A stretch of DNA of 64,000 nt from the sequence record NC_019521.1. One strand, given 5' to 3'. Below, in pieces: positions 3 through 34,186 of this stretch. Each line of letters begins with the position of its first letter. The first letter of the stretch is position 1. Position numbers and translations under genes: made by a program. The notes under the pieces were generated by a model. The model was not told the DNA's origin and searched no databases. It worked only from the letters and a program-made list of their open reading frames with translations.

Positions 3-488
3 TCTGAAGCTTGGGGAATCTGTGGAGGTATATTTTTCATGGGTCGTGAAGCTTTCATAAAAGTTGGAGGATTCAATGAAGAATATCGAGTTTATGGAAT
101 GGACGATGTTGACTTTACTAATAGATTTCTGTTAAACGATTATATCGTTAAGAAGTTTCCTGAAGTATTGTTTCATCACTTATTTCACCCTAGAACTTTA
201 GAAAATTCAGATGAAGCTGAATTGGAAAGATATAAACAGGAACTTACTTACTGGTATATCAATAAGAAAAACTTTGAAGAACAAATAGAAATTCCAAAAT
301 CTGATAGACTTGTAAGAAATCATATTTCTGAAAGATTCTTAGAATTAGCTAAACGTGATGAAAACTTCTTAGAACATGAAGTTAAATTTACTACAGATTT
401 AACAAAATTCGATCTAACTAGATTCCCAGAAAAATTCCAAAGACAAATAGGAATTCTTAAAGATGATCCAAATAAATTTTACGGATAA
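3..488 (+). CDS. GT2/GT7C-like glycosyltransferase, 5' truncated by window edge
   Basis: Frame is open from nt 3 (SEAWGICGGIFFMGREAF..). It carries GGFNEEYRVYGMDDVDF and LFHHLFH motifs and is a paralog of the next gene. Confidence 0.8.
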   Translation, partial: SEAWGICGGIFFMGREAFIKVGGFNEEYRVYGMDDVDFTNRFLLNDYIVKKFPEVLFHHLFHPRTLENSDEAELERYKQELTYWYINKKNFEEQIEIPKSDRLVRNHISERFLELAKRDENFLEHEVKFTTDLTKFDLTRFPEKFQRQIGILKDDPNKFYG

Positions 489-504
489 GACCAAAACGAA
501 ACAT

Positions 505-1500
505 ATGAAACATATTGCATTTACGATTCCATTTTGGAATGTAGGAAACGAAAAAGAAAGATTAGAAAACATAGGATACGTTAAACGTTCTTGTGACAAT
601 TTCGCAGACTATTTCAACAAAAACAATAAGAACGATTTCAAGATAGATGTAATCCTAGCTAATCTTGGTGAAGAAATCAATCCGTTATATCCTGAAGCTA
701 GATTCTATCAACATACTGGTTTAAAATATCGTTTCGAAAAACCAACCAGAATGAATACTTTGTTTCTAGATTTACTAGAAGAAGGATATGATTTCGTTGG
801 TATGTGTGATCCTGATATCATACTATTCGAAGAATACTTTGAGAAGCTAACTAAGAATATCGAAGATAATCTTGATTATTTCTCAATGCTTACATATTCT
901 GTAGCAAGAACAAAACCGGAATTACGAAAGGATTTAATTCTAGAAACTAGAGAATTTCAACATCTTTCAAATCATGAACTAATTATCGAATCTAATGCAC
1001 AAGCTGAAAACTGGCGAGTTTGTGGTGGTGCTTATTTCATGTCATTAGAATTCTTCCGTGATTTAGGAGGATGGAACGAAGATTACAGAGTTTATGGAAT
1101 GGACGATGACGATTATACTTTCAGATTCGAATTAACTGGTGGTAGCGTTGTAACAGATACATCGATTATTTGGCATCATCTTTGGCATCCAACAGTATTG
1201 GGTACAGCACCTGATTACGAATTAGAAAGATACGAATATGAATGCATGTATCGTAGACTTTCTAAGGATGTTTATGAAGAACAAATCAAATCGCATCTGT
1301 GTGATAGAACTAATCGATTGGAGCATCTTTCTGATAGATTCAATAAAGCATATAGTTATCCAGATTCATTCATTAAAGCTGCTAAGACTAACAATGTATT
1401 CAGTTACGAAATCGGTAAAAGGTCTATCGAAACTATGCCAATCGAAATCAAACGTAAATTGGGATTAGTTAATGATGATAAATTTTATGGTTCTTGTTAA
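505..1500 (+). CDS. GT2/GT7C-like glycosyltransferase (GT-A fold)
   Basis: DxD motif (CDPDII), CGGAYFM, GGWNEDYRVYGMDDDDY and WHHLWH. ATG 505 preferred over the track start at 463. Confidence 0.8.
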   Translation: MKHIAFTIPFWNVGNEKERLENIGYVKRSCDNFADYFNKNNKNDFKIDVILANLGEEINPLYPEARFYQHTGLKYRFEKPTRMNTLFLDLLEEGYDFVGMCDPDIILFEEYFEKLTKNIEDNLDYFSMLTYSVARTKPELRKDLILETREFQHLSNHELIIESNAQAENWRVCGGAYFMSLEFFRDLGGWNEDYRVYGMDDDDYTFRFELTGGSVVTDTSIIWHHLWHPTVLGTAPDYELERYEYECMYRRLSKDVYEEQIKSHLCDRTNRLEHLSDRFNKAYSYPDSFIKAAKTNNVFSYEIGKRSIETMPIEIKRKLGLVNDDKFYGSC

Positions 1501-1508
1501 TCAAATGA

Positions 1509-1538
1509 CCCTAGTATGTAACTTTCGATACATACTAG
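1509..1538 (+). terminator. 11-bp hairpin overlapping a promoter -35 box
   Basis: cctagtatgta-actttcga-tacatactagg right after the GT2 stop. Confidence 0.6.
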
Positions 1539-1545
1539 GTACTAT
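1517..1545 (+). promoter_or_regulatory. Phage promoter TGTAAC-N17-TACTAT
   Basis: Matches the window-wide consensus with exact 17-nt spacing. Confidence 0.65.
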
Positions 1546-1574
1546 ACATTCATAATCACATATTAATATATCAA

Positions 1575-2180: not shown

Positions 2181-2196
2181 ATCAGATAAGTATAAT
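2168..2196 (+). promoter_or_regulatory. Phage promoter TGAAAC-N17-TATAAT
   Basis: Consensus match upstream of the SSB gene. Confidence 0.7.
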
Positions 2197-2250
2197 ATTC
2201 TTTTAAAATACATATATTCATTAAACACTAAAAACCCTTAATTAAACGCC

Positions 2251-3300: not shown

Positions 3301-3331
3301 TCGACAATCGACAATCGTTTGGATCAATTAA

Positions 3332-4968: not shown

Positions 4969-5436
4969 ATGACCGAACAATTTCCAGAACATATAATTGA
5001 ATCACAAATAAAGATTTCGCACAGTGATTTATCTATTGATATGGATTACGATACTCTAATCGATGAGTATGACAAAACAGAATTTCTTGAATATTTGAAA
5101 GAAGTATTACCAAGATTAATTAATAATCTTCCAGAAAGGAAGGGAAAGGTTCAACCTGAAATTCAGGTATGTTCTAATTTCTTTATTGAATGTAAGAAGA
5201 AATTTCCAGGAATTACGGCGATGATAATATTCGACGAACTTACGGAAGTTTTAGAAATATCACCGGAATTATTACTTGCTAATTTGGCTAAACCTATCAA
5301 AAATCAATTGATAATCGAATTGAAAAGGAAGATAAGTTTAGACAAATATAACAAGAAAGTTCAAAAGGAATTCATAGAAAGAAATGGTGCTATTCAGCCA
5401 ACATTCTCATCTAGATTTCATAATCAAACTTTTTAA
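4969..5436 (+). CDS. Hypothetical protein
   Basis: ORF track; ATG at 4969. Confidence 0.65.
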   Translation: MTEQFPEHIIESQIKISHSDLSIDMDYDTLIDEYDKTEFLEYLKEVLPRLINNLPERKGKVQPEIQVCSNFFIECKKKFPGITAMIIFDELTEVLEISPELLLANLAKPIKNQLIIELKRKISLDKYNKKVQKEFIERNGAIQPTFSSRFHNQTF

Positions 5437-6305
5437 TCTTTACGTGGTAACGGTTTTATAGTAATATGTTCAGGTATTGGATTTTCAACAGTACCGTCAT
5501 AATCTGTTCTAGTTTCGAAAGAATTGTTTTTATCTTTGATGTGATGAGACCATTTAACTTTGTTCTCACCATCTGTGATATCTTCTAAATCTGGGTCAGG
5601 AATTATACCACCGTTACCATTTCCATCATTATCTGGATCACCATCGAGACCGTTACCAAATGAACCTTCTGGAGGCATTCCAACACCTGGATATTTTCTA
5701 AACAGATTATAGCTTGGATATTGTAACTGTAATGATAATTCTGTAGTTATGATTCTATTACGTCTTTCATGATCATAAGACATAGTTAGATTCTTTTCTT
5801 CTCCCATATTGAAGTTGAAAATATAAGCTCCGCTATAAGTCTTACTTAGATATGTAAATTCGTAAACGTTATGTTTAGCTAGAATCATTGTAAGAATCTC
5901 CATATATTTAAGAGCTGATAAAATGTTATCAGTTATTAAATGTAAACCGATATTCATGGTCATTGGAATCCGTTGAACTTTTGTTCTGAATTCTCTTGTA
6001 CCTTCTGACATATTAAGTTTAAACTTAGCTGTTTGATGTGGATTCGTTATTTCATCTCTCTGGAAATCGATATTTTGAATATCTAATTCGATTCTAGGTC
6101 TTTGTTGATATAATGTTTCACGGTCTCTGTTACTATCTTTGAATCCGGAATTTTGATCCATTATGAAAGCTTCATCACCAGTATTCAAAACAAATACTGG
6201 AATCTTAACAGGACCCATCCATAAAGACAAATCGTTAATCATCCCAACTAACGCATTTTCTAAATAATCGTGTGAAAAACTATCTAAAACTTTGGTAATA
6301 TTCAT
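5433..6305 (-). CDS. T4 gp15-like tail terminator / sheath stabiliser
   Basis: RPRIELDIQNIDF..RIPMTMNIGLHLITDNILSALKYMEIL resembles gp15 LPRMS..VPYNLNFELSI..QIVEQILP. AATACATA lies on the - strand at 6372-6379 upstream. Confidence 0.65.
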   Translation of the reverse strand: MNITKVLDSFSHDYLENALVGMINDLSLWMGPVKIPVFVLNTGDEAFIMDQNSGFKDSNRDRETLYQQRPRIELDIQNIDFQRDEITNPHQTAKFKLNMSEGTREFRTKVQRIPMTMNIGLHLITDNILSALKYMEILTMILAKHNVYEFTYLSKTYSGAYIFNFNMGEEKNLTMSYDHERRNRIITTELSLQLQYPSYNLFRKYPGVGMPPEGSFGNGLDGDPDNDGNGNGGIIPDPDLEDITDGENKVKWSHHIKDKNNSFETRTDYDGTVENPIPEHITIKPLPRKD

Positions 6306-7656: not shown

Positions 7657-8832
7657 ATGCGTAAACTATACATACTGAAATTCGATGAATCTTTGGATGA
7701 CGTCTCATGGTATTCTAAAGATTCAGATCATTTAACAGTTTCTGAAGTTAAGAACTTTGTAGAATTTGCTAAAGACGGATTCGAAATAAATCTAATTTCG
7801 TATATATCAGAAACTAGGAAACGTGACAATCTTACATTTCTAAACGTTTTCGATTTCATAGATACCGATATAAAGGAATCAGATGTTGTAATTTTCTGGA
7901 CTGGTTACAATTATTCGACTAGAGTTAAATGTGGTGTTTATGGAACTTTATGGTATACATGTTTCGCTTCACTACATAACAAACCAGTAACCCCTTACGT
8001 TTTATGTACTGATACTAGATGTTTCATGATGAATCCAGAATTCTTCATGGATAACAAAGTTTATAGTTCAGTTATCGGTAATACAATTGACAGTTTAGCT
8101 AAATCTGTTGATAAAGTAAAATTCAAATATCTAACACAGGCTAGAAATACTGAAGAATTTAAGAATCTTGTAAGAGCTAATCGAGACGCTAATCAAAATT
8201 TCTTAGAAACTATACATATTCCAACTCACTTACTTCCATTAGTTTCTCACAGAATGGAAAATATTACATATGAACATGACAATCAATATGTTTATTATGG
8301 TAGCGCTCCAATAGATTTTAGTAAGAAACGTGATTATCGTACTGAGAATATCTTTAATCTTTTCTATGCTAATAACTTTACAAATAAAGCTAAGGGTCGT
8401 TTAATCATAAATACTAAAGCTTGTGAAGTTCCAACTCAAATTACTAGTAATATCAAAGTATCTGATAGAATACCTTATTCAGAAATAAAGAATATGCTTA
8501 ATAAATCATTCGCTTCTGTTATTCTATCTGAAGAAGCTTATCAAAAGTGTGAGTTAATACCTAATCGTTTAATCGAAGGGTTAGCTGCTAAAACGTTATT
8601 ACTAATACATGAACAAGTATTGGGAGGTCTTATGAAAACTATTCATGATATTGGTTTTTCGTTATTACAGGTTATTGATATATCCAATGAAAGAGATTAC
8701 GAAACATCTAAACAGATCGATGAGCTAGCTTCAAATCATGAATTACGTAGAAGTATTATCATCAGTAATCAAAAACTTCTGAAAACTATTTTCAATCCAT
8801 TGAATCTTACAAATACAATAAATCGACTATAA
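7657..8832 (+). CDS. T4 beta-glucosyltransferase-like DNA glycosyltransferase (GT-B), paralog 1
   Basis: YVLCTDTRC vs BGT YYLFTDIRL. DRIPYSEIKNMLNKSFASVILSEEAY..IPNRLIEGLAAKTLLLI vs BGT GKIPMNMVSEKNSQAIAALIIGDKNY..TLRVWETMASDAVMLID (BGT sequence recalled). Confidence 0.7.
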   Translation: MRKLYILKFDESLDDVSWYSKDSDHLTVSEVKNFVEFAKDGFEINLISYISETRKRDNLTFLNVFDFIDTDIKESDVVIFWTGYNYSTRVKCGVYGTLWYTCFASLHNKPVTPYVLCTDTRCFMMNPEFFMDNKVYSSVIGNTIDSLAKSVDKVKFKYLTQARNTEEFKNLVRANRDANQNFLETIHIPTHLLPLVSHRMENITYEHDNQYVYYGSAPIDFSKKRDYRTENIFNLFYANNFTNKAKGRLIINTKACEVPTQITSNIKVSDRIPYSEIKNMLNKSFASVILSEEAYQKCELIPNRLIEGLAAKTLLLIHEQVLGGLMKTIHDIGFSLLQVIDISNERDYETSKQIDELASNHELRRSIIISNQKLLKTIFNPLNLTNTINRL

Positions 8833-8834: not shown

Positions 8835-9992
8835 ATGAATACAACAAAGAGACGACTATTTTTAATCAAATTCAAAGATTCGTTATCACCTGAATGTATC
8901 GATAAAGATACTATCAGATACAAAGAAATCTACAATGTTTTAAGATTCGTACCAACTAATGAATTCGAAATCAATCTAGTAAATTACGATAATCCGAAAG
9001 TTTCTGAAGAAAATAATCAACAGTATTACAAATACATTCATTATGAAGATTTCAAGAATCTGGAATTACTTGAAACGGATTTGTTAATTTTCTGGACTGG
9101 TTATATTTACGTTCCAACAGATGTCGATGTATCTAAAACTGATGCTTCTAATATTCGAGCATTTTATGAATGTTTAGAATCTACAAGAAATAAAGATAAC
9201 AAGCGATATCTGATTTGTACAGATACTAGATGTCCATTGATTAAGCCTGGTTTTTATTCAAGTAATGAAATATTCAAAGAAGAACTTAAGGATATCAATA
9301 TCGATGACATTCATTTGACATACCTAACACAAGCTATCGATCCTGAAGCATTTATCGAAATCGTTAAATCTTCAGAAATTAATAGTGTTCATAAAAATGT
9401 ATCAGCTATTCATATGAAGCTACATTTAGCTCCGTTAGTTTCACATGACATTCCAAAGATTAAGGAAAATCATAATGGTAAGTTTTTCTATTACGCTGGT
9501 GACTTACGTGATATCAGTAAACATAGATACGATAATATCATTAAGTTCTATTCAGTAGATTCTTCAGATTTATCAGTTAAACCATTGATAGCTTCAAACG
9601 TTCATCCAGATATTTACGATAAATTACCAAATGTTGAATTTATCAATAAGATACCATATTCTGAAGTTCCTGTAAGATTAAATGAAATGTTCGCTTCTGT
9701 TTGTTTCTCTGAAGCTGATTACGAAAAATGTAGACTTTTACCAAATCGTATTGCTGAAGGTATTGCTGCAAAAACACTTTTATTGATTCATCATAATATC
9801 GATCCAGAACGTAAGTTGAATTTAGAACCTTTACAGTATTTCGAAACTGTTGAAGACTTTAAGAAATCTTTGAAGTATTATTCAGAAAAACCTCATAGAC
9901 GTATTAACGCTATCAACAATCAACGTTATCAACTTTCGATAGAAGGTGATTTAGATGCTTTTCAGTTTTCAAGGGACTTTAGTACTATTTAA
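8835..9992 (+). CDS. T4 beta-glucosyltransferase-like DNA glycosyltransferase (GT-B), paralog 2
   Basis: YLICTDTRCP and NKIPYSEVPVRLNEMFASVCFSEADY..PNRIAEGIAAKTLLLIHHNID; clearly paralogous to 7657-8832. Confidence 0.7.
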   Translation: MNTTKRRLFLIKFKDSLSPECIDKDTIRYKEIYNVLRFVPTNEFEINLVNYDNPKVSEENNQQYYKYIHYEDFKNLELLETDLLIFWTGYIYVPTDVDVSKTDASNIRAFYECLESTRNKDNKRYLICTDTRCPLIKPGFYSSNEIFKEELKDINIDDIHLTYLTQAIDPEAFIEIVKSSEINSVHKNVSAIHMKLHLAPLVSHDIPKIKENHNGKFFYYAGDLRDISKHRYDNIIKFYSVDSSDLSVKPLIASNVHPDIYDKLPNVEFINKIPYSEVPVRLNEMFASVCFSEADYEKCRLLPNRIAEGIAAKTLLLIHHNIDPERKLNLEPLQYFETVEDFKKSLKYYSEKPHRRINAINNQRYQLSIEGDLDAFQFSRDFSTI

Positions 9993-9995: not shown

Positions 9996-11228
9996 ATGAA
10001 TAAACCATTAATACTTAGAGAACTAATATTCCAACAATATTCTAGTTACGATAAGAACATCCAGATGTACAACATACATCTGGATGGTAACTTAAATGCT
10101 ACATTACATGCAATTTGTAACGATTTCAAAGTTATGACAAATGTAGCATTACATTTGAAACGTAATTTCCATCTAGAATATACAATCACTATTCCAAAGA
10201 ATACAAAACCTAATTCGTTAACATTGATTACTAATTTCGTAGAAGGTTTAGAAAAACTGATATCTAACGAAAACGTTTCATTATCCATCGTATTCAAAAA
10301 TATCAAATATAGAAACTCTGCTAAAGAAAATCGAGATAACGGTGAATGGATATTAGCAGATGGTATTAACGAAATCGATATTAACGAATTCGATTCTATA
10401 TCAACTAATTTCGAAAAATCTTTAGACTTAGTTAGTTCTTTCGAAGCTTTATACAATTGGAAATCTGAAGTATCTGAAGCTTTTAGAATCCTAGACATTA
10501 AGAAACGTAGATTCAGTTCTAGATTAAACGTTTCGTTACATTCTAAGGAAGATGAACGTGAATATCTTAAAGGTCTTGAGAAGAACTGTTCAACACTTTT
10601 CGCATTTTCAGATTCTGTGACATTACATAATCAAGCTCAATTAGATTACATAAAGAATTATTATGTTTCAGATACATATGATAAATTTAGACTTTTGAAT
10701 GGTAAAATAAACAAAGGTTTTAATGCTGAATTTATAGAATATCAAATGTCATTTTACAAATCTGTAAATACGATAAAGAAAAATCAATTGATTCAGTTCT
10801 TCGAAAACTATGATATAGAATACATATTTCCTTTTAGACTAACTGACCCGGATTGGGGATTTCAAAATCTTACTGATGAAGAGAAATCAAAAACTGTAGT
10901 AACTGATCCAACGAATTCGATACTATTAGTAACTGATGAAATACAAAAAGCTTTCATCGAATGTGTCAGAGGTTTGGATAAACGTACATTATTATTTACG
11001 TTATTCGATCTTATCAGAACTAAGAAAATAGATGTAAAGATTCCACTGTTTTCTAATCCTTTGAATATTTTACATCAGACAAGTATCGAAATACTTTATT
11101 TGATATACGATAATATCGATTTCAGATTCGATAAACATGATACTTTCGAAACTGACATTTACGATATGTTCTATGTAACTGGGAATACAACAAATTGGTT
11201 AAACAAAATAACAAAAACAAATGACTAA
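9996..11228 (+). CDS. Putative DNA arabinosyltransferase (Aat / RB69-type)
   Basis: Ordered motifs DGNLN, TIPKN, LHNQAQLDYI, IFPFRLTD, VTDPTNS and LHQTSIE match my recollection of the RB69-type Aat motifs DGNFQ, IPKN, LNPRQREYI, FWPFRISD, ITDPNDS and LHPGTIE. Needs a profile search. Confidence 0.55.
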   Translation: MNKPLILRELIFQQYSSYDKNIQMYNIHLDGNLNATLHAICNDFKVMTNVALHLKRNFHLEYTITIPKNTKPNSLTLITNFVEGLEKLISNENVSLSIVFKNIKYRNSAKENRDNGEWILADGINEIDINEFDSISTNFEKSLDLVSSFEALYNWKSEVSEAFRILDIKKRRFSSRLNVSLHSKEDEREYLKGLEKNCSTLFAFSDSVTLHNQAQLDYIKNYYVSDTYDKFRLLNGKINKGFNAEFIEYQMSFYKSVNTIKKNQLIQFFENYDIEYIFPFRLTDPDWGFQNLTDEEKSKTVVTDPTNSILLVTDEIQKAFIECVRGLDKRTLLFTLFDLIRTKKIDVKIPLFSNPLNILHQTSIEILYLIYDNIDFRFDKHDTFETDIYDMFYVTGNTTNWLNKITKTND

Positions 11229-11928
11229 AATACAAGATAAACAAGAATTCGATAGTTTAGATGAAGCTTATCTAACTTTACTAAAAAGTTTGATCGATTT
11301 AGAACCTAACGAATTAGGTGAACGTGAAATGTTTGGTATCGCTTTCGATATCAAAAATATTGATGAAACTGATCCTAAAACTAATTTCAGTAAAATCAAA
11401 GAACGTAATATCAATTTAGTATTTCAAAATGCTTTCGCTCGTTGGTTAATGTCAGGTTCTAATTCAGCTGATGAGCTTTTACCACTGAATAAACGAACTT
11501 CTCAGTTTAATGAAATCGAAGGTAGAAATCTTCTATATCCACCACGTATTCAGAATCAAATTTATGACATAGTTGATGAATTAACCGAAAATCCTATGTC
11601 AAGACGTGCTACATTATTGATACTTGACGAAAGGGATCAGATAGTTAGAAAAGAAAAACGTGAGAAATCTGATTGTAAGAAAGAATATCCTTGTACAATA
11701 GCATTACATTTCTTTATTCGTAATAACAGATTACATTCAAATGTTATGATGCGTTCTAATAATGCTGTTAAAACTATATGTTTCGATTTTTCTAATTTCG
11801 CTTTCGTACAAAATTGTATAGCTAGAGAATTAGATTTGAAAGCTGGAACTATGCATTATTACATATCAAATGCTCACATTTTACCTGAAGATTATGAACA
11901 TGCTTTAAAAATCTGTGAAGCTAACTAA
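11221..11928 (+). CDS. Thymidylate-synthase-family dCMP-modifying enzyme (dCMP hydroxylase/hydroxymethylase-like)
   Basis: SRRA, catalytic YPC158, MRSNN(178-181), Asp189 at the TS Asn177 specificity position, SNAHI. Short TS fold. Confidence 0.8.
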   Translation: MTKIQDKQEFDSLDEAYLTLLKSLIDLEPNELGEREMFGIAFDIKNIDETDPKTNFSKIKERNINLVFQNAFARWLMSGSNSADELLPLNKRTSQFNEIEGRNLLYPPRIQNQIYDIVDELTENPMSRRATLLILDERDQIVRKEKREKSDCKKEYPCTIALHFFIRNNRLHSNVMMRSNNAVKTICFDFSNFAFVQNCIARELDLKAGTMHYYISNAHILPEDYEHALKICEAN

Positions 11929-11956
11929 GAAACATTCGAATTGAGTTTGGTAATAT
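11928..11956 (+). promoter_or_regulatory. Phage promoter AGAAAC-N17-TAATAT
   Basis: Consensus-like; implies the next gene starts at ATG 11977, not TTG 11941. Confidence 0.55.
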
Positions 11957-11976
11957 TATACCAAACTCAATTTAAC

Positions 11977-13134
11977 ATGGCTAGAATAATAAAACTAGCA
12001 ATAATTGGTAACAGTGAGTATAACGATTTCGATCAGTTTACGAATCAGGTTACTGATGTATTGCAAAAATTAAAGAACACTACAGAAGACGTTTTGATCG
12101 AATATCATTACGTATCGATTGGTAGTAAATTAGGTGAATTGTCGAAGAGATTTCTAAATGCTAACCCAAAGCAACTCTATTCATCTCATACTATTCAATA
12201 CAAGAATCTTAATGCTAAACCTTGTACTGTAAGAATAGATAAGAACGGTGATTCTTATAACAGTTTAGCTCCTTTAGCTACACTTATAAATCTAATGAAT
12301 GTAGCAGATTATGTAATAGCTTTCTGGAATGGTACTGAAAAAGATTCTTTCATAAAAAGGGCTTTGACTAAATTCAAATCGAAATATTCTAAGAATTCTG
12401 AATATCGACAAAGATTACGAATAGTAAAATTCGAATCAGCTTGGATGCAAGCAAAAGGTGATTATGTTAAAGACATAGATCAGAATAAGGATTCATTGTT
12501 TTCAAAAGATTCTAAAGAATCGTATGTAACGATTAAAACTAAATTGAATACTATCAATCAGTCAGGATTAACACATGACGAGATAAACAAAAAGTTCAAT
12601 GATGTTGTAAAGAATCTAACAATAACTACTGAATCGCATTTACATGGTCCTAACTTTAAAATGTTACATGGTAATGGATCGTTAGAAGGTAAGCATACTA
12701 TCAGAATAAGTGGAACTCTCAGAAAGACTATGAATATCGAAAATCTTAACGATAATAACATAGCAACTGTAGCCTTTTATCTACCTGTAAATGAATTTGC
12801 AGATTTACTAAAGTTCATAATTTGGTGTCATGAAAACATAAAGATTATGGATGTTTCAGAAACTACAGAACTTCATAATAACGATGCTATAAATCCTCAA
12901 TGGTCTTACATGAATCATAAGGGTGAAAGTGTACATTTCTGTTACTATGAACAGAAACTTCCTGAAGTATCTTTCCAAATGATTAAGATGTATTCGATAG
13001 TTAACAATGTATCATACGAACAATTCGTAAATCTTTCACAATGGGGATTGTTTAACGCTAAAGGTTCTATCGTTTTCAAAGCTAGGAAATACTTGGAATG
13101 TTTACATGATTTGAAACTTATCCAAAAAGATTAG
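11977..13134 (+). CDS. SLOG (DUF2493/YspA-like) domain protein with unknown C-terminal domain
   Basis: KLAIIGNSEYNDF and ADYVIAFWNG resemble DUF2493 KLAIIGSRTFNDY and ADAVIAFWDG. Confidence 0.55.
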   Translation: MARIIKLAIIGNSEYNDFDQFTNQVTDVLQKLKNTTEDVLIEYHYVSIGSKLGELSKRFLNANPKQLYSSHTIQYKNLNAKPCTVRIDKNGDSYNSLAPLATLINLMNVADYVIAFWNGTEKDSFIKRALTKFKSKYSKNSEYRQRLRIVKFESAWMQAKGDYVKDIDQNKDSLFSKDSKESYVTIKTKLNTINQSGLTHDEINKKFNDVVKNLTITTESHLHGPNFKMLHGNGSLEGKHTIRISGTLRKTMNIENLNDNNIATVAFYLPVNEFADLLKFIIWCHENIKIMDVSETTELHNNDAINPQWSYMNHKGESVHFCYYEQKLPEVSFQMIKMYSIVNNVSYEQFVNLSQWGLFNAKGSIVFKARKYLECLHDLKLIQKD

Positions 13135-13165
13135 TACTTTATATTTAATCAAATACTTATACAAC

Positions 13166-13708
13166 ATGAAACATTTAATGACTATTTTCATGATGTTAAT
13201 AGTTTCATTAACGTCATGTAACAAAGAGGAAATCATAGAACCTGAACCACCAAAGAAAATCAAATACGAATTGTTTCTTTGGTCTCCCGCTAGAATGGAA
13301 ACTTATTTTCTGATACGAGATGATTCAGATAAGCAATATCAAAGTTTCTTAGATTACGCTGATTGGAATATGTTTGCAGGTCCTGAAGATCGTAATAAAT
13401 CTGAAATTACATTTTCAGGTGAAATGTTAGAATCTGAAACTTTAAGATTCCATTTACGTGGATTAGATTACGATTTAATGCCAATGGAATATAATTTCAA
13501 GGATTTCGTTTTAACTATAGACGATGAAATTGTTTATGTCGATAAAGGTATCAGAATACATGAAATTCAAATCATATATGAAGCTAAAACTGGTAAGGTT
13601 ACTGTAAACAAAAATACTAATTACGATAACGAATTACCACGTATTCCAGCTGACAGACTTGATAGCTATTATCGACCTAACTATACTATCAAAAGACCTA
13701 GAAATTAA
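13166..13708 (+). CDS. Lipoprotein (Bacteroidota-type signal)
   Basis: MKHLMTIFMMLIVSLTS-C lipobox followed by acidic NKEE. Confidence 0.7.
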   Translation: MKHLMTIFMMLIVSLTSCNKEEIIEPEPPKKIKYELFLWSPARMETYFLIRDDSDKQYQSFLDYADWNMFAGPEDRNKSEITFSGEMLESETLRFHLRGLDYDLMPMEYNFKDFVLTIDDEIVYVDKGIRIHEIQIIYEAKTGKVTVNKNTNYDNELPRIPADRLDSYYRPNYTIKRPRN

Positions 13709-13738
13709 AACTTACCGTTTCGCAATACCCTTCTCAAT

Positions 13739-13766
13739 GAAAACCTGATAGAAATATCAGGTTTTC
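13739..13766 (+). terminator. Terminator, 12-bp stem with GAAA loop
   Basis: gaaaacctgata-gaaa-tatcaggttttc. Confidence 0.75.
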
Positions 13767-13771
13767 TAGTT

Positions 13772-13800
13772 TGAAACTTTGTTCAAATCATTAGTACTAT
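13772..13800 (+). promoter_or_regulatory. Phage promoter TGAAAC-N17-TACTAT
   Basis: Consensus match upstream of rmlB. Confidence 0.7.
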
Positions 13801-13822
13801 TCATTTAAATCAAATAATAATT

Positions 13823-14845
13823 ATGTCAAATATTAAACGTTCAGTTCTTGTAACTGGTGCTCTTGGATTCATTGGTTCTAATTTCGTTAGAACTATGGCA
13901 AAAAGATATCCAGATTACTTATTCATTCCACTTGATAATTTCGGATATGCTGCAAACCTGGAACATATCCCAGTCTTTGAAAAACTTACAAACGTTACAA
14001 AAGTTCAAGAAATAACTTTAGGTAGTTTCGATGAAGCTGAAAACTTTATTCTAGCTTCAATTTTCAAAACTTATGACATTGATACTGTGGTACATTTTGC
14101 TGCTGAATCACATGTCGATAATTCGATTTCTAATCCTGACATATTCGTTTTAGCTAATGTCAAAGGTACTGTCGATTTATTGAATGTTGCTAAGAATTAT
14201 TGGGCTGATCGTAAAGATGTAATATTCCATCATGTTTCAACCGATGAAGTATTTGGGGCTCTTGGAATGGAAGGTTCATTTAACGATGATTCTAATTACG
14301 ACCCACATTCACCTTATTCAGCTTCAAAAGCTGCAAGTGATATGTTCGTTAAAGCTTATGCTACGACTTACAATATGTTAGTATCGATTTCTAATTGTTC
14401 AAATAACTTCGGACCATATCAACACAAGGAAAAACTGATTCCAAAAGTTTTAGACGCAATTAAGAACAAAACTGAAATACCTCTTTACGGACATGGTCAA
14501 AATGTTAGAGATTGGTTACATGTTTTAGATCATAACGACGCTATAGATATGATTATCCATCATACTTTGAAATCTAAAGAATCTCGTAGAACTTGGTTAA
14601 TCGGTGGAGGTGTTGAATTAACAAATATAGAATTAATCGATAGACTAACAGAATCTGCTAATGAACATGATAATACATTTGATTATAAGTCATTGATTAA
14701 ATTCGTATCAGATCGTGCTGGTCATGATTTACGATATTCAATAGATTCTAGCACCTTACGTAAAGAACTTGAATGGAAGCCAAAATACGACATTACTAAA
14801 TGTATACCTTACATGATCGGAGAAACTTTAGGATTTACGAAATAA
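13823..14845 (+). CDS. rmlB: dTDP-glucose 4,6-dehydratase
   Basis: GALGFIG Rossmann motif, HFAAESHVDNSI, HVSTDEVFG, YSASK, DRAGHDLRY. Confidence 0.92.
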   Translation: MSNIKRSVLVTGALGFIGSNFVRTMAKRYPDYLFIPLDNFGYAANLEHIPVFEKLTNVTKVQEITLGSFDEAENFILASIFKTYDIDTVVHFAAESHVDNSISNPDIFVLANVKGTVDLLNVAKNYWADRKDVIFHHVSTDEVFGALGMEGSFNDDSNYDPHSPYSASKAASDMFVKAYATTYNMLVSISNCSNNFGPYQHKEKLIPKVLDAIKNKTEIPLYGHGQNVRDWLHVLDHNDAIDMIIHHTLKSKESRRTWLIGGGVELTNIELIDRLTESANEHDNTFDYKSLIKFVSDRAGHDLRYSIDSSTLRKELEWKPKYDITKCIPYMIGETLGFTK

Positions 14846-15417
14846 TGAAAAACATACCAGCAGGAATTGAAGGATGTATTTTTATACAGAATTCACAATT
14901 TAAAGATGAACGTGGATCGTTCAGAGAAACTTTCAGTAAAGAACGATTATCGTTCATATGTAAACATGAATTTGTTCAGGACAATGTTTCGATATCACAT
15001 AAGAATGTATTACGTGGAATGCATATTCAAACAGGTGATTCTGTACAAGGTAAACTTGTTACATGTCTTAAAGGTAGATTAATCGATTTAGTTGTAGACA
15101 TTCGTAAAGATTCTCTTACTTACGGTAAGACTATTACAGTATTACTACATGAACCAAATATGTCGTTATTTGTACCACGTGGTTGTCTACATGGATTCAT
15201 ATCATTAGAAGACGATACAATCATGCATTACAAATGTGATAACTATTATTCGAAAGAACATGAAGTATCTTATGACCCTTTAAGTTTACCGGAAAATATA
15301 TTCATACAAATCGAACAGGGTTTTAATATCGGTATAGACGATTTGATTATCAATTCTAAAGACAGAACTGGTAAAATGATCTATACTAACGAAGGAATTT
15401 TAAGTTCATTCATTTAA
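14845..15417 (+). CDS. rmlC: dTDP-4-dehydrorhamnose 3,5-epimerase
   Basis: DERGSFRE, VQDNVS, VLRGMHIQ, QGKLV, HGF. TAATG coupling to rmlB gives start 14845. Confidence 0.9.
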   Translation: MKNIPAGIEGCIFIQNSQFKDERGSFRETFSKERLSFICKHEFVQDNVSISHKNVLRGMHIQTGDSVQGKLVTCLKGRLIDLVVDIRKDSLTYGKTITVLLHEPNMSLFVPRGCLHGFISLEDDTIMHYKCDNYYSKEHEVSYDPLSLPENIFIQIEQGFNIGIDDLIINSKDRTGKMIYTNEGILSSFI

Positions 15418-15420
15418 CAT

Positions 15421-16302
15421 ATGCTTACAAGAAATAGAAAAGGAATTATTTTAGCAGGTGGGTCTGGGACCCGCTTGCATCCATTGACTATCAGTGTTTC
15501 GAAACAGTTATTACCTGTATACGATAAACCAATGATTTACTATCCATTGACAACTCTTATCGAAGCTGGTATAAACGAAATACTTATAATATCAACACCA
15601 CAGGATAGAAATTCTTTCGAGAACTTACTAGGTAACGGTTCACAATTTGGTGTTAGAATAGAATACGCTGTTCAAGAAAAACCTAATGGTTTAGCACAAG
15701 CTTTCGTTATCGGTGAAGAATTCATAGGTAAATCTAAAGTAGCTCTGATTTTAGGTGACAACATTTTCCATGCTTCTAATATAGATAGATTACTTATGGA
15801 AGCTAATATGTCTGATAAAAATACGATATTTGCATATCGTGTAAATGATCCTCAGAGATATGGTGTAGTTGAATTCGATGAATATGATAACGCTGTTTCG
15901 ATCGAAGAAAAACCTTTGAATCCTAAATCTAATTACGCAGTACCAGGCTTATATTTCTATAATAACGATGTTATCGAAGTAGCTAAGACTATCAAACCTT
16001 CAGCTCGTGGAGAATACGAAATATCAGATATTAACGCATATTACTTAGATAAGAATCAATTATCAGTTAAAGCTTTTGACAGAAGTGGTACTACATGGTT
16101 AGATACTGGTACTATTCAGTCTTTAGCTGAAGCTTCTTTATTTGTTGAAGTCATGCAAAATCGTACCGGTAATTTAATAGGTAGCCCCGAAGAAGCTGCA
16201 TTTAGACATGATGAAATATCTAAAGACTCATTAATTGAATCTGCTAAGAAATATGATAAGTCTGGTTATGGTGAGTATCTTTTGAAACTTGTACAGAAAT
16301 GA
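15421..16302 (+). CDS. rmlA: Glucose-1-phosphate thymidylyltransferase
   Basis: GIILAGGSGTRLHP, SKQLLPVYDKPM, LGDNIF, EEKP, WLDTGT. Confidence 0.95.
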   Translation: MLTRNRKGIILAGGSGTRLHPLTISVSKQLLPVYDKPMIYYPLTTLIEAGINEILIISTPQDRNSFENLLGNGSQFGVRIEYAVQEKPNGLAQAFVIGEEFIGKSKVALILGDNIFHASNIDRLLMEANMSDKNTIFAYRVNDPQRYGVVEFDEYDNAVSIEEKPLNPKSNYAVPGLYFYNNDVIEVAKTIKPSARGEYEISDINAYYLDKNQLSVKAFDRSGTTWLDTGTIQSLAEASLFVEVMQNRTGNLIGSPEEAAFRHDEISKDSLIESAKKYDKSGYGEYLLKLVQK

Positions 16303-18375: not shown

Positions 18376-18417
18376 AAACCCATGTAACTGAAACTTACAT
18401 GGGTTTCGTAGTATAAT
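18376..18417 (+). repeat. Hairpin-promoter cassette 1 (stem-CTGAAAC loop-stem + TAGTATAAT)
   Basis: aaacccatgtaa-ctgaaac-ttacatgggttt; TGAAAC-N17-TATAAT. Confidence 0.85.
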
Positions 18418-19244: not shown

Positions 19245-19805
19245 ATGAACATATTCTTCCTAGATAACGATGAAACTATTTCAGCTTCATTATATACTGA
19301 TAAGCATATTATCAAAATGATTACAGAAACTTGTCAGATGCTTTCAACTTACGCTCATGAGAAATTCGAAAATCATCCTGTAGAGCTTTACAAACCTACA
19401 CATCGTAATCATCCATGTACTAAATGGTTATTCGAATCAACTAATAACGTTATACGTTTATGTAATATCGGTATTGCATTAGTTTCTGAATATCATTACA
19501 GATTCGGTAAACTTAACAATTTCTATAAAGCTAAACAAATACTTCATTATGTTTCGTTTAGAATTCTAGATTGCAGTTTCGAACTAGGTACCGAATTACC
19601 CTGTGTTGTAGCTGAATATGATGAGAATCTTTCAGTTTTCGAAAATTACGAAAAGTATTACATTACTCACAAGTTACAAAATGCTAAGTTTACTAACAGA
19701 CGTGAGTCAGAATTACATTGGACTAATAAAGCTGTAACATATTACGGGCAACAAAAGATTAAGGAAATTCAACAGATACTTCAAATACCAATAGAAAGAT
19801 TTTAA
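19245..19805 (+). CDS. Pyrimidine-dimer DNA glycosylase (DenV/Pyr_excise)-like protein
   Basis: MNIFFLD..DKHIIKMITETCQMLST and YKPTHRNHPCTKW. Confidence 0.7.
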   Translation: MNIFFLDNDETISASLYTDKHIIKMITETCQMLSTYAHEKFENHPVELYKPTHRNHPCTKWLFESTNNVIRLCNIGIALVSEYHYRFGKLNNFYKAKQILHYVSFRILDCSFELGTELPCVVAEYDENLSVFENYEKYYITHKLQNAKFTNRRESELHWTNKAVTYYGQQKIKEIQQILQIPIERF

Positions 19806-22739: not shown

Positions 22740-22783
22740 GAAACCCTCGGAAACTGAAACTTTCGAGGGTTTCGTAGTACTAT
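22740..22783 (+). repeat. Hairpin-promoter cassette 2
   Basis: gaaaccctcggaaactgaaactttcgagggtttcgtagtactat. Confidence 0.85.
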
Positions 22784-23408: not shown

Positions 23409-23452
23409 AAAACCTACGGAAACTGAAACTTTCGTAGGTTTTGTAGTATAAT
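23409..23452 (+). repeat. Hairpin-promoter cassette 3
   Basis: aaaacctacg-gaaactgaaacttt-cgtaggtttt then gtagtataat; compensatory stem changes. Confidence 0.85.
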
Positions 23453-30024: not shown

Positions 30025-30744
30025 ATGAACAAACAAACTAATCTCCTGTTTGACGACAGACAAGACTTAGCTAAATCATTGGAACATAGACTGACCAATG
30101 TGAACAACCAACTTAACCAATTTGTAGCTGAATTCCGTAAACTTGTACAAGACCCGCAAAGTAATGTATTACACATGTTCGATATGATTATCAACAAAAA
30201 TGATAGAATCGATATCGATCATACAATCTATTTATGTGGTATCGGTAAGAACATTCCATCACTTCGTAAAGCTTCAGCAACTTTTAAATCGTTAGGTCTT
30301 AAATGTGAAGTACTTGACGCAGTTGATGCTTTACATGGTGATTTAGGTTGTATCAGGGATTATGATACTGTAATATTCTTTTCGAAATCTGGTAATACTT
30401 CAGAATTGTTAAGAACTATGCAATATTTAGATTCCATAAACACTGTAATTGATGGTGAAAGTTCTGTATCGAATAAATCTATTTGTATAGATATGTTTGC
30501 AGTTTCAATGAATAGCGAATTCGATTCAGGTTTTGAAAACTTCAAAACCATCAATCATGTAGTATTACCGAAAACCGGTGAAGCTGACGAATTCAATAAA
30601 GTCCCAACCACTTCACCGATAGCCTTCCAAATCTTCTTAGACATGTTAGCTTGTGAATATGCTTCTGTTTATGATTTGACTTTAGAAGATTTCGGTGGTA
30701 ATCACCCGGGTGGTGACATTGGAAAATTCATAAACAAAAACTAA
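30025..30744 (+). CDS. KdsD/GutQ-like SIS-domain arabinose-5-phosphate isomerase (no CBS domains)
   Basis: CGIGKN..RKASATFKSLG, ALHGDLG, FSKSGNTSEL, VPTTS, NHPGG at the C-terminus. Confidence 0.8.
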   Translation: MNKQTNLLFDDRQDLAKSLEHRLTNVNNQLNQFVAEFRKLVQDPQSNVLHMFDMIINKNDRIDIDHTIYLCGIGKNIPSLRKASATFKSLGLKCEVLDAVDALHGDLGCIRDYDTVIFFSKSGNTSELLRTMQYLDSINTVIDGESSVSNKSICIDMFAVSMNSEFDSGFENFKTINHVVLPKTGEADEFNKVPTTSPIAFQIFLDMLACEYASVYDLTLEDFGGNHPGGDIGKFINKN

Positions 30745-30947: not shown

Positions 30948-30950
30948 ATC

Positions 30951-30979: not shown

Positions 30980-30993
30980 TCATTCTTTCAATT

Positions 30994-31416: not shown

Positions 31417-31434
31417 TCAGTTTCTTAGTAATAT
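31406..31434 (+). promoter_or_regulatory. Phage promoter AGAAAC-N17-TAATAT
   Basis: Consensus-like, upstream of the nucleotidyltransferase-kinase gene. Confidence 0.55.
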
Positions 31435-31466
31435 TCAATTATAAAAACTTAACAAAAACAAATTTA

Positions 31467-33197
31467 ATGGAGCATGTAGTTATATTGGCTGGTGGTCTTG
31501 GTTCTAGACTTCATAAATTTACAGCTAATCTTTATCCTAAGATTTTGATTTCGATGGGTAACGAAACTATGTTAGACAAACTTGTAAATTACTATTCAGT
31601 TTACAAGGATTTGAAATCGTTTAACATTGTCGTTTCGACTGAAGAAAATCAAAGACTTATATCTAATTATCTGAATCGATATCATTCTAACGCTTTCGGA
31701 AAAAATACAAAAATCGATGTATTACTTTACAAAAAGTTAGATGGTTCTTTCAATACGATTTACAACCTATTCAAGGGTCAGGGATTGAAGAATGTAGTAT
31801 TCAATTGGTCTGATATCATTCCAACATCACATCTTCAGGTAACAAAATTATTGACTAACGAATTCAAGATAATTACTGATGTTCAAAAACGTCATAGGAT
31901 GGGTATCGAATTTAGACAAGGTACAAGAACTTATGAAGTTGTCAAATATTCGAAAGATGATATGAAGGGTAACATTCCAGGATATTTCTTTATAGGTGAT
32001 TTCGATAGTATATTCGATCATGTATTCGTTGATAACTTAAGACTATATCATAATCTGTCACCAGAAATAGATTTGATGGATGCTTTAGAAGCACAAATCG
32101 AAAAGAATAGATGTATAGTTTCAACTAATGAAATAGATTTTATCGATATCGGAGATGTTGAAAAATATGAAAAATACATGGAAACGATATCGTTAGAAAC
32201 TAGATATTTCAATAGTTTAGAAATTACTGAAAATACAGTTCGTAAGAAAGCTTTAAACGAAAAAGGTATGTCAGTAATCGATAATGAATTGAATTGGTAT
32301 TCTACAGTTGGTAGATTCTTTCCAGATACTAAAAATCGTCCAGCTATTCCAAGAATTTCTAATATTCAAAAGAATTATGATTATCCTCAAGGTGAACAGA
32401 AATTTCATTCTATTGAATTTTCAATGAATCGTATTGACGGTAAAACTGTTGACGAATATCTTTGGAACGATCCTTTAGAAATGTATAATGTATTACGTTT
32501 ATTTGATACTGAGATTTCTAAGTTTCATAATATCGAACAATCGAATAAACCTGAAAAACGTTGGAATGAACATCATATGCATGAATATTTCAAAGTTACA
32601 TATCAACGTTTAGATGAAATATTCTTCATGTTACAAGCTGATGTACATCATTTCAAAATCGGTGATAAGATTCATAGTTTCAAAGGTGATACTATTCATT
32701 TACTTGAACATACTATGAAATATCTTTATGACGCTTATTCTAAATCTGAAGCTAATGAATGGGGATTGATTCATGGTGACCCAAACACTTCTAACGTAAT
32801 GATTTCTAATGATGGTACCGAAATGTTCTTTATCGACCCAAGAGGATTATTCGGACATTCTTTGATGTTTGGTGATATTTATTACGATTGGGCTAAATTC
32901 ATATATGGACTTCAAGGTTATTCTAGATTCAATTTAGATAAGACTTTCGAATTACATTATGACGAACATAGTAAAACTATGCAAGTAGATTTCTTCAAAT
33001 ATGGAATCTATGATATCGATACAGTGTTACATACTGTAAAACAGATTAGACCTGATTTAGATATCAAGCGTTTACGTGTTATCGTTGGTTTGATTCATGT
33101 TAAATTAGCACAGTACATAAGAAACAATCCATCAAAAATGTACGCAACTTATTATTACGGTAAATACTTATTAGAAACAACCTTATCTGAAAAATAA
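31467..33197 (+). CDS. Sugar-1-phosphate nucleotidyltransferase fused to APH/choline-kinase-like sugar kinase
   Basis: N-terminal VILAGGLGSRL..PKIL, NWSD and DIGD. C-terminal LIHGDPNTSN and FFIDPRG kinase motifs. Confidence 0.8.
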   Translation: MEHVVILAGGLGSRLHKFTANLYPKILISMGNETMLDKLVNYYSVYKDLKSFNIVVSTEENQRLISNYLNRYHSNAFGKNTKIDVLLYKKLDGSFNTIYNLFKGQGLKNVVFNWSDIIPTSHLQVTKLLTNEFKIITDVQKRHRMGIEFRQGTRTYEVVKYSKDDMKGNIPGYFFIGDFDSIFDHVFVDNLRLYHNLSPEIDLMDALEAQIEKNRCIVSTNEIDFIDIGDVEKYEKYMETISLETRYFNSLEITENTVRKKALNEKGMSVIDNELNWYSTVGRFFPDTKNRPAIPRISNIQKNYDYPQGEQKFHSIEFSMNRIDGKTVDEYLWNDPLEMYNVLRLFDTEISKFHNIEQSNKPEKRWNEHHMHEYFKVTYQRLDEIFFMLQADVHHFKIGDKIHSFKGDTIHLLEHTMKYLYDAYSKSEANEWGLIHGDPNTSNVMISNDGTEMFFIDPRGLFGHSLMFGDIYYDWAKFIYGLQGYSRFNLDKTFELHYDEHSKTMQVDFFKYGIYDIDTVLHTVKQIRPDLDIKRLRVIVGLIHVKLAQYIRNNPSKMYATYYYGKYLLETTLSEK

Positions 33198-34186
33198 TGA
33201 AATTTAAAGGAACTGACCAAAAAACTTCAAGACTGATATTCACCGACTTCGATGGTATCTTCAGTCATGATATGCAATACTCATATATTGACAGAACTAG
33301 TAACGGTCCTGAGAAAAATGCAAAAACTGTAGCATTCGGTATTCGTGATGTTGTTAAGATTCTGAATTACGCTGGTTTCGAAATTCATATTGTTTCGGGT
33401 GATTCTACAGAAAAAGGTCAAGCTTTAACTAAGAAGTTTTTACATAACATTCATGTGGAATCTGTAAACTTTGTACCAACCGATCAAAAACTTGATAGAA
33501 TTCTTGAACTAGCTAATGGTAGGGATTTCATCTGGATCGGTGAGGACTTGATTGACTTACAAATCAAGGAATTCGCCATGAATTACATAACTACCGATAA
33601 CGCTCCAAACATGTTGAAGGAATTAGCTGATGCTAACTTTAGACAAGATTATTTTTGGCACGATTTGTTATCATATTTAATGAAAACTAAAATCTTCAAT
33701 GTTGTTGACGAAGATACACATTGTCTGATAAAATACGCTTTACAGAAATACATCAAACCAGATTTCTTCAAGTTAGTAAGTTACGGATTGATTGATAAAA
33801 ACTATCTAATCGAATCCTTAGAAACATATCGAGGTGTTGAAGAACTTAACGAAATCAAAGTTAACGATATTGAAGACTTCATGGATAAGATAAAAACTAC
33901 AGAAGTTCTAAAAACTGTACCAGTCTTTGGTAAACTCGATTTGATTTCATCTATGAAAGTTTTAGTCAATAACATTTGTAAACATGAACTTAAGTTTGTA
34001 TATACTAAGAACGTTCATTTGTTTTCAGACACTGTAAATATCGGTGACATATTCGAAGTTCTTTCATCATTAAGATTTACAGAATCTTCTAACAGTTTCC
34101 ACGATTACTATATCTACGGATTTACAAAAATCGTAGAAGGTAAGATTGAAAACATGTTAAACGAGAAGTTAGGAGCTAAATTCTAG
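33197..34186 (+). CDS. KdsC-like HAD phosphatase with C-terminal extension
   Basis: FTDFDG motif I, IVSGD motif II, WIGEDLIDL motif IV (KdsC YIGDDLIDW). Confidence 0.75.
   Translation: MKFKGTDQKTSRLIFTDFDGIFSHDMQYSYIDRTSNGPEKNAKTVAFGIRDVVKILNYAGFEIHIVSGDSTEKGQALTKKFLHNIHVESVNFVPTDQKLDRILELANGRDFIWIGEDLIDLQIKEFAMNYITTDNAPNMLKELADANFRQDYFWHDLLSYLMKTKIFNVVDEDTHCLIKYALQKYIKPDFFKLVSYGLIDKNYLIESLETYRGVEELNEIKVNDIEDFMDKIKTTEVLKTVPVFGKLDLISSMKVLVNNICKHELKFVYTKNVHLFSDTVNIGDIFEVLSSLRFTESSNSFHDYYIYGFTKIVEGKIENMLNEKLGAKF

Follow-up and report, generated by a model that had tools for sequence, protein, structure and literature searches.

In phage T4, a thymidylate synthase (TS) homologue (gp42) carrying the N177D substitution acts before replication, and the 5-hydroxymethylcytosine (hmC) of the DNA is glycosylated after replication by alpha- and beta-glucosyltransferases. 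A second route, that to arabinosyl-5-hydroxycytosine, is described in the Straboviridae (RB69, DLP3, the Afh genes of HY126 and the Serratia phages LC53 and CHI14), where a compact cluster encodes a dCMP 5-hydroxylase with the D169N substitution, a thymidylate kinase (Tmk)-like kinase, an arabinose-5-phosphate isomerase (API), a bifunctional AfhE-type enzyme, a small HAD phosphatase (phrog_1238) and, by the TS gene, an Aat-type glycosyltransferase of the GT-B fold. Chains of galactose and glucose are built on 5-hydroxycytosine (5hoC) in Rhizobium phage RL38J1 (Pootjesviridae; PMC13326640), while GT-A enzymes of metavirome phages glycosylate DNA and GT-B enzymes resembling the T4 beta-glucosyltransferase (BGT) often neighbour ThyS homologues (bioRxiv 10.1101/2023.12.21.572611). 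The subject of this report is a stretch of 64,000 nucleotides of record NC_019521.1 (the window), from the genome of Sphingomonas phage PAU, of which the region at positions 3-34186 would hold most of the cytosine hypermodification pathway of this phage. The explanation as a whole is given a probability of about 0.65.

The first 20 kb of the window are 99.9% identical to the genome of PAU (JQ362498 / NC_019521, 219,372 bp), in which positions equal those of the window plus 124000. The host strain, HER1398, is now classed as Sphingobacterium (PMC3738902), and an earlier examination of the letters alone (the sequence-only reading) was thus right in its guess of a Bacteroidota jumbo phage. The genome has a G+C content of 30-32%, and the genes considered here lie on the + strand, bar one. 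In a constant field, PAU DNA migrates 26% more slowly than the DNA of lambda, and it contains 'partially modified cytosine', the nature of which was left undetermined by Hua et al. (2017, PMC5646251). The gene set described below is probably the source of this modified cytosine, and an arabinosyl-5hoC core in PAU DNA is a well-supported prediction because the family signatures of the encoded proteins are joined by a published modification of cytosine. No link between PAU genes and 5hoC glycosylation was found in the literature searched; Thomas et al. (2018) list PAU only for a homologue with 24% identity to the AfhE-type protein of RB69. PAU is cultured and available, its cytosine modification was shown in 2017 and the chemistry never solved, and the present analysis yields a specific, testable answer.

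The PAU set is a variant of the 5hoC glycosylation systems from a new host phylum, in which transferase families are combined in a new way and joined by a deoxyhexose pathway. The enzymes of the Straboviridae route listed above have counterparts in it, the one of the Aat-type transferase being a candidate. PAU is, however, a 219-kb jumbo phage of Bacteroidota that is not classified in the Straboviridae, its genes are scattered rather than compactly clustered, and its Aat-like protein is ~100 aa longer than the Straboviridae Aat and diverges in the N-terminal domain. The extension transferases differ as well, belonging to the T4 BGT family and the GT-A class in PAU, whereas for RB69 and DLP3 GT-B enzymes similar to BshA and PimA are predicted, and PAU further encodes all of RmlABCD and a phosphatase of KdsC-like type. 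The PAU record annotation contains no U32-type protein, although no search aimed at U32 was made. With T4, PAU shares a pre-replicative TS homologue with N177D followed, in the predicted scheme, by post-replicative glycosylation, but its TS homologue carries D169N, predicting hydroxylation rather than hydroxymethylation. RL38J1 resembles the PAU prediction in that 5hoC anchors a hetero-oligosaccharide, with several transferases and a phage-encoded nucleotide-sugar enzyme (PMC13326640); it differs in its sugars (galactofuranose and glucose, as against predicted arabinose with or without others), in its transferase families and in having neither an arabinose module nor rml genes. The metavirome enzymes (GT-A and GT-B, linked to C5-methyltransferase/5mYOX or to ThyS) use post-replicative 5-hydroxymethylcytosine, unlike the PAU scheme. 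As for the JGT/TarP-like clade of DNA-modifying GT-A enzymes, what the PAU proteins show are general GT-A features (DxD, Glyco_transf_7C motif), and PAU does not appear in the one supplementary file of that study (bioRxiv 10.1101/2023.12.21.572611) that was searched.

The predicted 5-hydroxylase, kinase and arabinose genes

All the gene classes named in the sequence-only reading were found in the window between positions 3 and 34186 by Pfam, PHROG, profile and fold evidence. The five glycosyltransferases that it had counted are all there, and the set proved larger, with a sixth (gp169, GT-A) outside the window. Also located elsewhere in the genome are an AfhF-type phosphatase (gp95), RmlD (gp271) and a MazG-like pyrophosphatase (gp295). 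Two metagenomic PAU-like contigs, retrieved via gp181, served as relatives for comparison; only the longer one reaches the rml and API/AfhE regions.

The TS homologue gp182 (11221-11928, +) is a predicted dCMP 5-hydroxylase (5-hydroxy-dCMP, or 5hodCMP, synthase). It matches PF00303 at 2e-11 and falls well under the NCBIfam cut-offs for thymidylate synthase, and its PDB matches are led by MilA (2e-16), with 9iqu/9iqc at 1e-14. Aligned with Escherichia coli ThyA, it retains the catalytic C146 (YPCTIALHF over APCHAFFQF), an invariant column, and carries both N177D (CFD over PFN), at the cytosine-specificity residue, and D169N (MRSNNAV over QRSCDVF). Asparagine at ThyA position 169 is also found in CHI14 gp038, in ORF167 of the Tenacibaculum phage PTm1 and in the homologues of the PAU relatives, whereas aspartate occupies it in T4 gp42, MilA and the canonical ThyA of PAU, gp25. 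D169N is the diagnostic residue of dCMP 5-hydroxylases, and all D169N homologues tested made 5hoC (Lee et al., PMC13326640). With D169N in gp182, 5hoC rather than hmC is the base predicted. The sequence-only reading had placed a dCMP-type enzyme of the TS family on the arabinose route with either base as its product; the cytosine type stands, while of the two bases hmC is dropped.

The product of gp172 (1575-2180, +) is a thymidylate-kinase-like nucleotide kinase (PF02223 at 3.5e-7; phrog_761 at 7.5e-26) and a candidate 5hodCMP kinase; in both relatives the gene for this type of kinase adjoins the Aat-like gene or lies one gene off, near the TS homologue. For a dCTPase, which the sequence-only reading had proposed to seek in the rest of the genome, the MazG-like gp295 is the candidate; it matches by PHROG (1.4e-62) and has no sequence match in Pfam or the PDB. 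The record and scans also show genes for canonical ThyA, dCMP deaminase, dUTPase and dihydrofolate reductase in PAU. The canonical thymidylate synthase gp25 (PAU genome 16974-18305, 443 aa) contains an insertion of ~150 residues after the part aligned to E. coli ThyA residues 100-104.

The arabinose donor module begins with gp212 (30025-30744, +), an API with a SIS domain (8e-7) that matches phrog_5670 at 4.3e-79 and is 30.5% identical to the CHI14 API (2.7e-16). An AfhE-like bifunctional protein is encoded by gp215 (31467-33197, +), with an N-terminal nucleotidyltransferase domain (NTP_transferase, residues 4-72) and a C-terminal sugar kinase domain (APH/EcKL kinase, residues 322-479), and would make the nucleoside diphosphate (NDP)-arabinose donor. 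It matches phrog_4098 at 1.7e-158, has full-length homologues in CHI14 (6e-40) and PTm1 (1e-41), and shows full-length homology to a protein in 356 phage records, nearly all of T4-like arabinosylating lineages. The start of gp216 (33197-34186, +) overlaps the gp215 stop by 1 nt. Its product combines a KdsC-like HAD-IIIA sugar-phosphate phosphatase domain (residues ~12-150; NCBIfam KDN-9-P phosphatase at 2e-4, HAD-IIIA at 0.024) with a C-terminal half of no recognised family, and the motifs DFDG, SGD and GEDLID can be read in its sequence. It is distinct from the small AfhF-type HAD phosphatase gp95 (genome 67544-67984, outside the window), which has a DFDGT motif and matches phrog_1238 (1.3e-30), the PHROG that it has in common with the CHI14 HAD phosphatase gp042. 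As a candidate for the AfhF phosphatase, gp214 was ruled out, showing no similarity to the CHI14 HAD protein. The arabinose, TS-homologue and Tmk-like route of RB69/LC53-type phages, which had been recognised from the sequence-only reading, is present and, with gp181 as the putative Aat, is complete once gp95 is counted.

The gene for the candidate first transferase onto 5hoC in DNA, gp181 (9996-11228, +), overlaps the TS gene gp182 by 8 nt and encodes a GT-B glycosyltransferase whose C-terminal domain is Aat-like. The stretch of residues 271-370 matches the Aat family phrog_3891 at 1.9e-6, the PHROG of CHI14 gp037 (2e-149), which is itself encoded next to the CHI14 TS homologue. An AlphaFold (AF2) model of medium confidence (predicted local distance difference test score, pLDDT, 70.5; predicted template modelling score, pTM, 0.73) gave its best viral fold matches with a 311-aa protein of Acinetobacter phage KARL-1 (7e-11), followed by a 308-aa protein of Serratia phage Muldoon (5e-8) and RB69 ORF047c (1.6e-4), and PDB matches with the GT-B enzymes 4xsu, 1uqt and 6kih. 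ORF047c is part of the RB69 arabinosyltransferase gene (PMC13326640, Table 1). Direct sequence searches of Pfam, NCBIfam and the PDB with gp181 returned nothing significant, its N-terminal domain has no detectable sequence match, and PAU itself is its sole match in IMG/VR. The comparison of the gp181 family with the BGT-like family by hhalign was likewise not significant (E 0.71).

Further glycosyltransferases and the rhamnose pathway

Directly upstream of gp181 lie gp179 (7657-8832, +), an enzyme of the T4 BGT family (GT-B) orthologous to the copy of the relatives, and gp180 (8835-9992, +), a second and more divergent member. The two are paralogues with 34% identity, and gp179 is 41% and 38% identical to 403-aa proteins of the relatives' loci L005 and L006, respectively. 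A BGT-like profile made from gp179, gp180 and three metagenomic relatives was run against 1.84 billion proteins. This profile of PAU-like proteins alone reaches true BGT homologues, including P0020 at 2e-11, a protein that T4 BGT matches at 1e-34, and PF09198 is matched by 17 of the 58 proteins retrieved with it. The iterated profile matches PDB entry 1bgt at 2.4e-39 over its full length (residues 2-347). In an alignment of T4 BGT with seven PAU-like proteins, the columns of T4 residues E22, D100, R195, Y261, R269 and E272 are invariant, gp179 and gp180 thus keeping what we take, from the BGT structure literature, to be the catalytic and UDP-binding residues. By profile, the two proteins are divergent members of the T4 BGT family, in line with the BGT-like call of the sequence-only reading. 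Identity to T4 BGT is only ~16-18%, direct searches of Pfam, NCBIfam and the PDB with either protein found nothing significant apart from a weak Glyco_trans_1_2 match of gp180 (0.015), and a word-based homologue search with gp180 retrieved only gp180 itself. The location of T4-BGT-family genes beside that of a predicted 5-hydroxylase, and not of the expected hydroxymethylase, implies an acceptor that is new for relatives of BGT.

Two BGT-family genes (ORF055 and ORF058) also occur in Chryseobacterium phage MA9V-1 (positions 12832-16221 of locus L002), in a region syntenic with PAU. ORF056, which lies between them, was ruled out as a TS homologue, and no D169N TS homologue was found in the 31 kb examined, the only TS there being canonical. 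MA9V-1 consequently gives no support on the acceptor base.

The GT-A transferases form a group of three paralogues. The C-terminal part of gp170 lies at 3-488 (+), the full gene beginning 492 bases before the window, and is followed by gp171 (463-1500, +), a GT-A enzyme of GT2/GT7-like type that is predicted to be inverting; gp169, the third, is encoded outside the window. The part of gp170 in the window matches Glyco_transf_7C at 6.4e-8 (2.4e-12 for the full-length protein) and phrog_26327 at 4.6e-69, the corresponding values for gp171 being 1e-6 and 3e-181, and both of the GT2-like calls of the sequence-only reading are upheld. Against the PDB, the family profile of gp171 reaches beta4GalT7 at 1.5e-5, and the GT-A motifs DxD (CDPD), GGxNE..YGxDDxD..R and HLxH are kept across six aligned members of the family.

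The rml cassette encodes RmlB, a dTDP-glucose 4,6-dehydratase (gp185, 13823-14845, +; GDP_Man_Dehyd 6.7e-70), RmlC, a dTDP-4-dehydrorhamnose 3,5-epimerase (gp186, 14845-15417, +; dTDP_sugar_isom 1.1e-47) and RmlA, a glucose-1-phosphate thymidylyltransferase (gp187, 15421-16302, +; NTP_transferase 1.6e-72). The missing RmlD, for which the sequence-only reading had pointed to the rest of the genome, is encoded there by gp271 (RmlD_sub_bind 2.7e-29), with PDB matches that are all RmlD (dTDP-4-dehydrorhamnose reductases), and the RmlABCD pathway is therefore complete. A recent host origin of RmlA was rejected, as it is only 61-67% identical to the Bacteroidota proteins (63% in Sphingobacterium).

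Conservation, proposed pathway and alternative explanations

Both relatives retain two GT-A genes, the single-stranded DNA-binding protein (SSB) gene, a UvsW-like helicase gene, a BGT-like gene, the Tmk-like kinase, the Aat-like transferase and the D169N TS homologue, to which the longer contig adds API and AfhE; the shorter one stops short of the rml and API/AfhE regions. The relative from SRR25428695 has a single BGT-like copy, while L006 has an additional, more divergent copy of 362 aa. Beyond these contigs, the Tenacibaculum jumbo phage PTm1 has adjacent genes for AfhE, a histidine phosphatase and a D169N TS homologue and is, on these predicted functions, another jumbo phage of Bacteroidota with the 5hoC system. 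The system is thus not unique to PAU among Bacteroidota phages, since PTm1 has AfhE together with the D169N homologue. The claim that the host group is new for such systems is softened by the occurrence in PTm1. By the signature carried by PAU, the two metagenomic relatives and PTm1, 5hoC glycosylation is extended from phages of Proteobacteria to jumbo phages of Bacteroidota. In PTm1 (locus L003, 18730-22927), ORF163 matches gp181 in its N-terminal part and ORF164 in its C-terminal part, so that the two are possibly a split Aat-like gene, and the histidine phosphatase stands where the HAD enzyme would be expected, as a non-orthologous phosphatase.

A promoter-like motif, TAGTAnnAT, occurs at 35 sites on the + strand of the window, 23 of them no more than 90 nt upstream of a start codon, in zones that make up only 13% of the window. 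It precedes gp172, gp173, gp179, rmlB, gp211 and gp215, as well as the ligase, helicase and nrdH genes, and variants precede gp170, at 18 nt before the start (TTAGTATAATA), and gp95. The rmlB gene has a stem-loop of its own and a promoter-like TAGTACTAT 31 nt upstream. No such motif was found upstream of the capsid, portal, sheath and terminase genes when up to two mismatches to GTAGTATAATA were allowed. The sharing of TAGTAnnAT, and its lack before the main structural genes, suggests by consensus match that the sugar genes are expressed along with the genes of DNA metabolism.

In the pathway proposed, gp182, of the flavin-dependent dCMP 5-hydroxylase class, would convert dCMP to 5-hydroxy-dCMP, which gp172 and the host NDP kinase would raise to the triphosphate and the phage polymerase would build in as 5hoC, while gp295 may deplete dCTP. 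Ribulose-5-phosphate would be converted to arabinose-5-phosphate by gp212 and to arabinose-1,5-bisphosphate by the kinase domain of gp215, the 5-phosphate would be removed by gp95 and/or the KdsC-like gp216, and the nucleotidyltransferase domain of gp215 would then make NDP-arabinose. After replication, gp181 would place arabinose on the cytosine 5-hydroxyl in DNA, and gp179, gp180 and gp169-gp171 would add more sugars, either onto the first sugar or directly onto 5hoC. RmlABCD, which is PAU-specific, would provide dTDP-L-rhamnose for either gp169 or gp180, transferases that are likewise PAU-specific. The order of the steps, the acceptors, the donor of each transferase and the final glycan are what we infer from the gene set. 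The core of the pathway, in which 5hoC would be made, incorporated and arabinosylated, is considered likely; the odds that the DNA receives one or more sugars beyond arabinose are about even, and that rhamnose is among them is doubtful.

The fullest version, a 5hoC hetero-oligosaccharide assembled by three unrelated transferase families (Aat-like, T4-BGT-like and GT-A) and including L-rhamnose, is accordingly tentative. The sequence-only reading had already proposed a mixed oligosaccharide from the arabinose route, extra transferases and a deoxyhexose donor; the gene classes that it named are present, and action of the extra enzymes on DNA is plausible. If the version is true, PAU would have the first 6-deoxyhexose found on DNA, and no single phage described would have a more complex machinery for a DNA glycan; through the rml cassette, gp169, gp180 and gp216, the glycan would have been lengthened recently by comparison with the metagenomic relatives. 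A rhamnose pathway feeding a DNA glycan would also add a new sugar class to DNA chemistry and yield new enzymes, of use in DNA glyco-engineering and in work on the evasion of restriction and CRISPR. By our own arithmetic, one arabinose per cytosine at ~31% G+C adds ~7% to the DNA mass, and four or five sugars per cytosine add ~25-30%, figures that speak to plausibility only, mobility not being a simple function of mass.

Several observations weigh against the reading of the region as a cytosine hypermodification pathway. The genes are dispersed, in three blocks within 34 kb and with gp95, gp271 and gp295 at distances of 55-90 kb, and the dCTPase role proposed for gp295 comes from a PHROG name. 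The likeness of gp181 to Aat, as seen in a medium-confidence model, is confined to the C-terminal domain of a protein ~100 aa longer, and hhalign of the gp181 family with CHI14 gp037 was not significant (E 0.12). Neither gp179 nor gp180 matches PF09198 (CAZy GT63) directly, even at E <= 10. The modification is only partial according to Hua et al. (PMC5646251), and the same authors ascribe the mobility shift to a change of charge, which neutral sugars leave unaltered. Missing from the longer relative contig are the rml cassette, an orthologue of gp169 (its pair of GT-A genes is preceded by a gene that is gp168-like, with 64% identity), a second gene of BGT-like type, gp213 and gp214, and also gp216, which is absent from L007, the one relative contig that covers its region. 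As far as one contig shows, the core would be conserved, and a sugar-donor pathway would be a gain of PAU, together with two transferases and a phosphatase.

Some of these points also fit a division of labour in which the DNA receives arabinosyl-5hoC, possibly with a hexose from the BGT-like enzymes, and the rml genes and GT-A trio glycosylate virion proteins (capsid decoration, mop-like tail fibres) or a host surface polysaccharide. The rml genes form an autonomous unit that has a terminator and a promoter to itself and occupies a variable site beside a lipoprotein gene, and this unit is missing from the long relative contig. Its RmlA is an ordinary Bacteroidota-type enzyme by the identities given above, and the nearest solved relatives of the GT-A family are beta-1,4-galactosyltransferases, with no member of the family known to act on DNA. 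Rhamnose-containing glycans occur on virion proteins of chloroviruses and giant viruses, phage-encoded GT-A enzymes glycosylate mycobacteriophage virions, and to our knowledge the viral rhamnose pathways described so far serve protein glycans; a deoxyhexose on DNA was not reported in the literature searched. The GT-A genes, however, lie directly against those of the Tmk-like kinase, SSB and UvsW helicase and are kept with the TS/Aat-like/BGT-like block in both relatives, and rmlB, gp170 and gp172 share with replication genes the promoter-like motif, which was not found before the main structural genes. DNA-modifying GT-A enzymes of phages do exist (bioRxiv 10.1101/2023.12.21.572611), and the 26% mobility shift suggests a bulky adduct. 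Such a division is possible, at odds clearly below even.

A T4-like scheme, with gp182 making 5-hydroxymethyl-dCMP, the BGT-like enzymes glucosylating hmC and the arabinose genes serving elsewhere, is very improbable. It could draw on the membership of gp179 and gp180 in a family whose founding member acts on hmC and on MilA, a CMP hydroxymethylase, as the best PDB match of gp182, but gp182 has asparagine at ThyA position 169 like all tested 5hoC synthases, where T4 gp42 and MilA have aspartate (PMC13326640), and hmC was rejected as the PAU base on this residue. A complete API/AfhE/AfhF/Aat-like set is otherwise known only from arabinosyl-5hoC phages. Only a little less improbable is a charged non-sugar adduct (an amine, for example) that unrecognised genes would attach and that would cause the mobility shift, leaving the glycosylation genes to contribute little to virion DNA. 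The interpretation of the shift by Hua et al. as negative charge lost or positive charge gained (PMC5646251) would suit it, as would the many unassigned PAU genes, among them gp183, gp211 and gp214 beside pathway genes. No aminotransferase, radical-SAM enzyme, DNA kinase or other enzyme of amine hypermodification was, however, seen among the scanned open reading frames of the window or in the record annotation elsewhere, whereas the full and conserved gene set for 5hoC glycosylation is encoded in the genome.

Neighbouring genes and intergenic cassettes

Beside the TS homologue, gp183 (11941-13134, +) encodes a 397-aa protein of no recognised family, without a match in Pfam, the PDB, PHROG or NCBIfam. 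A word-based homologue search retrieved only gp183 itself; it is 25% identical to a homologue in L005 and is missing at the same place in the other relative, and an AlphaFold model from the two sequences had a pLDDT of 35 and no usable fold. By eye, its N-terminus resembles a nucleotide-binding domain of the SLOG/DUF2493 type (KLAIIG..., DYVIAFWNG), a likeness unsupported by any database match. The small gene gp184 (13166-13708, +) separates gp183 from the rml cassette, in a place where the relative contig is different; it encodes a predicted lipoprotein with a signal peptide and an LTSC lipobox, and may be a superinfection-exclusion or moron gene.

The sole minus-strand gene in the span considered, gp176 (5433-6305, -), stands among co-directional neighbours; it has a marginal PHROG match and otherwise no family, and is kept on the minus strand in both relatives. 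Unannotated in the record, gp194 (19245-19805, +) has a weak match to pyrimidine-dimer DNA glycosylases (Pyr_excise 6e-6; T4 DenV-like).

Eight near-identical intergenic cassettes, against none expected by chance, lie on the + strand of the window at 18383-18413, 22749-22779, 23418-23448, 35954-35984, 38766-38796, 51179-51209, 51945-51975 and 52725-52755. In each, a stem-loop rich in G+C (..GGAAACTGAAACTT..GGGTTTC) is joined to the promoter-like GTAGTATAATA, and the cassettes are similar to the promoter-early stem-loops of T4-like phages, elements suggested to favour gene shuffling.

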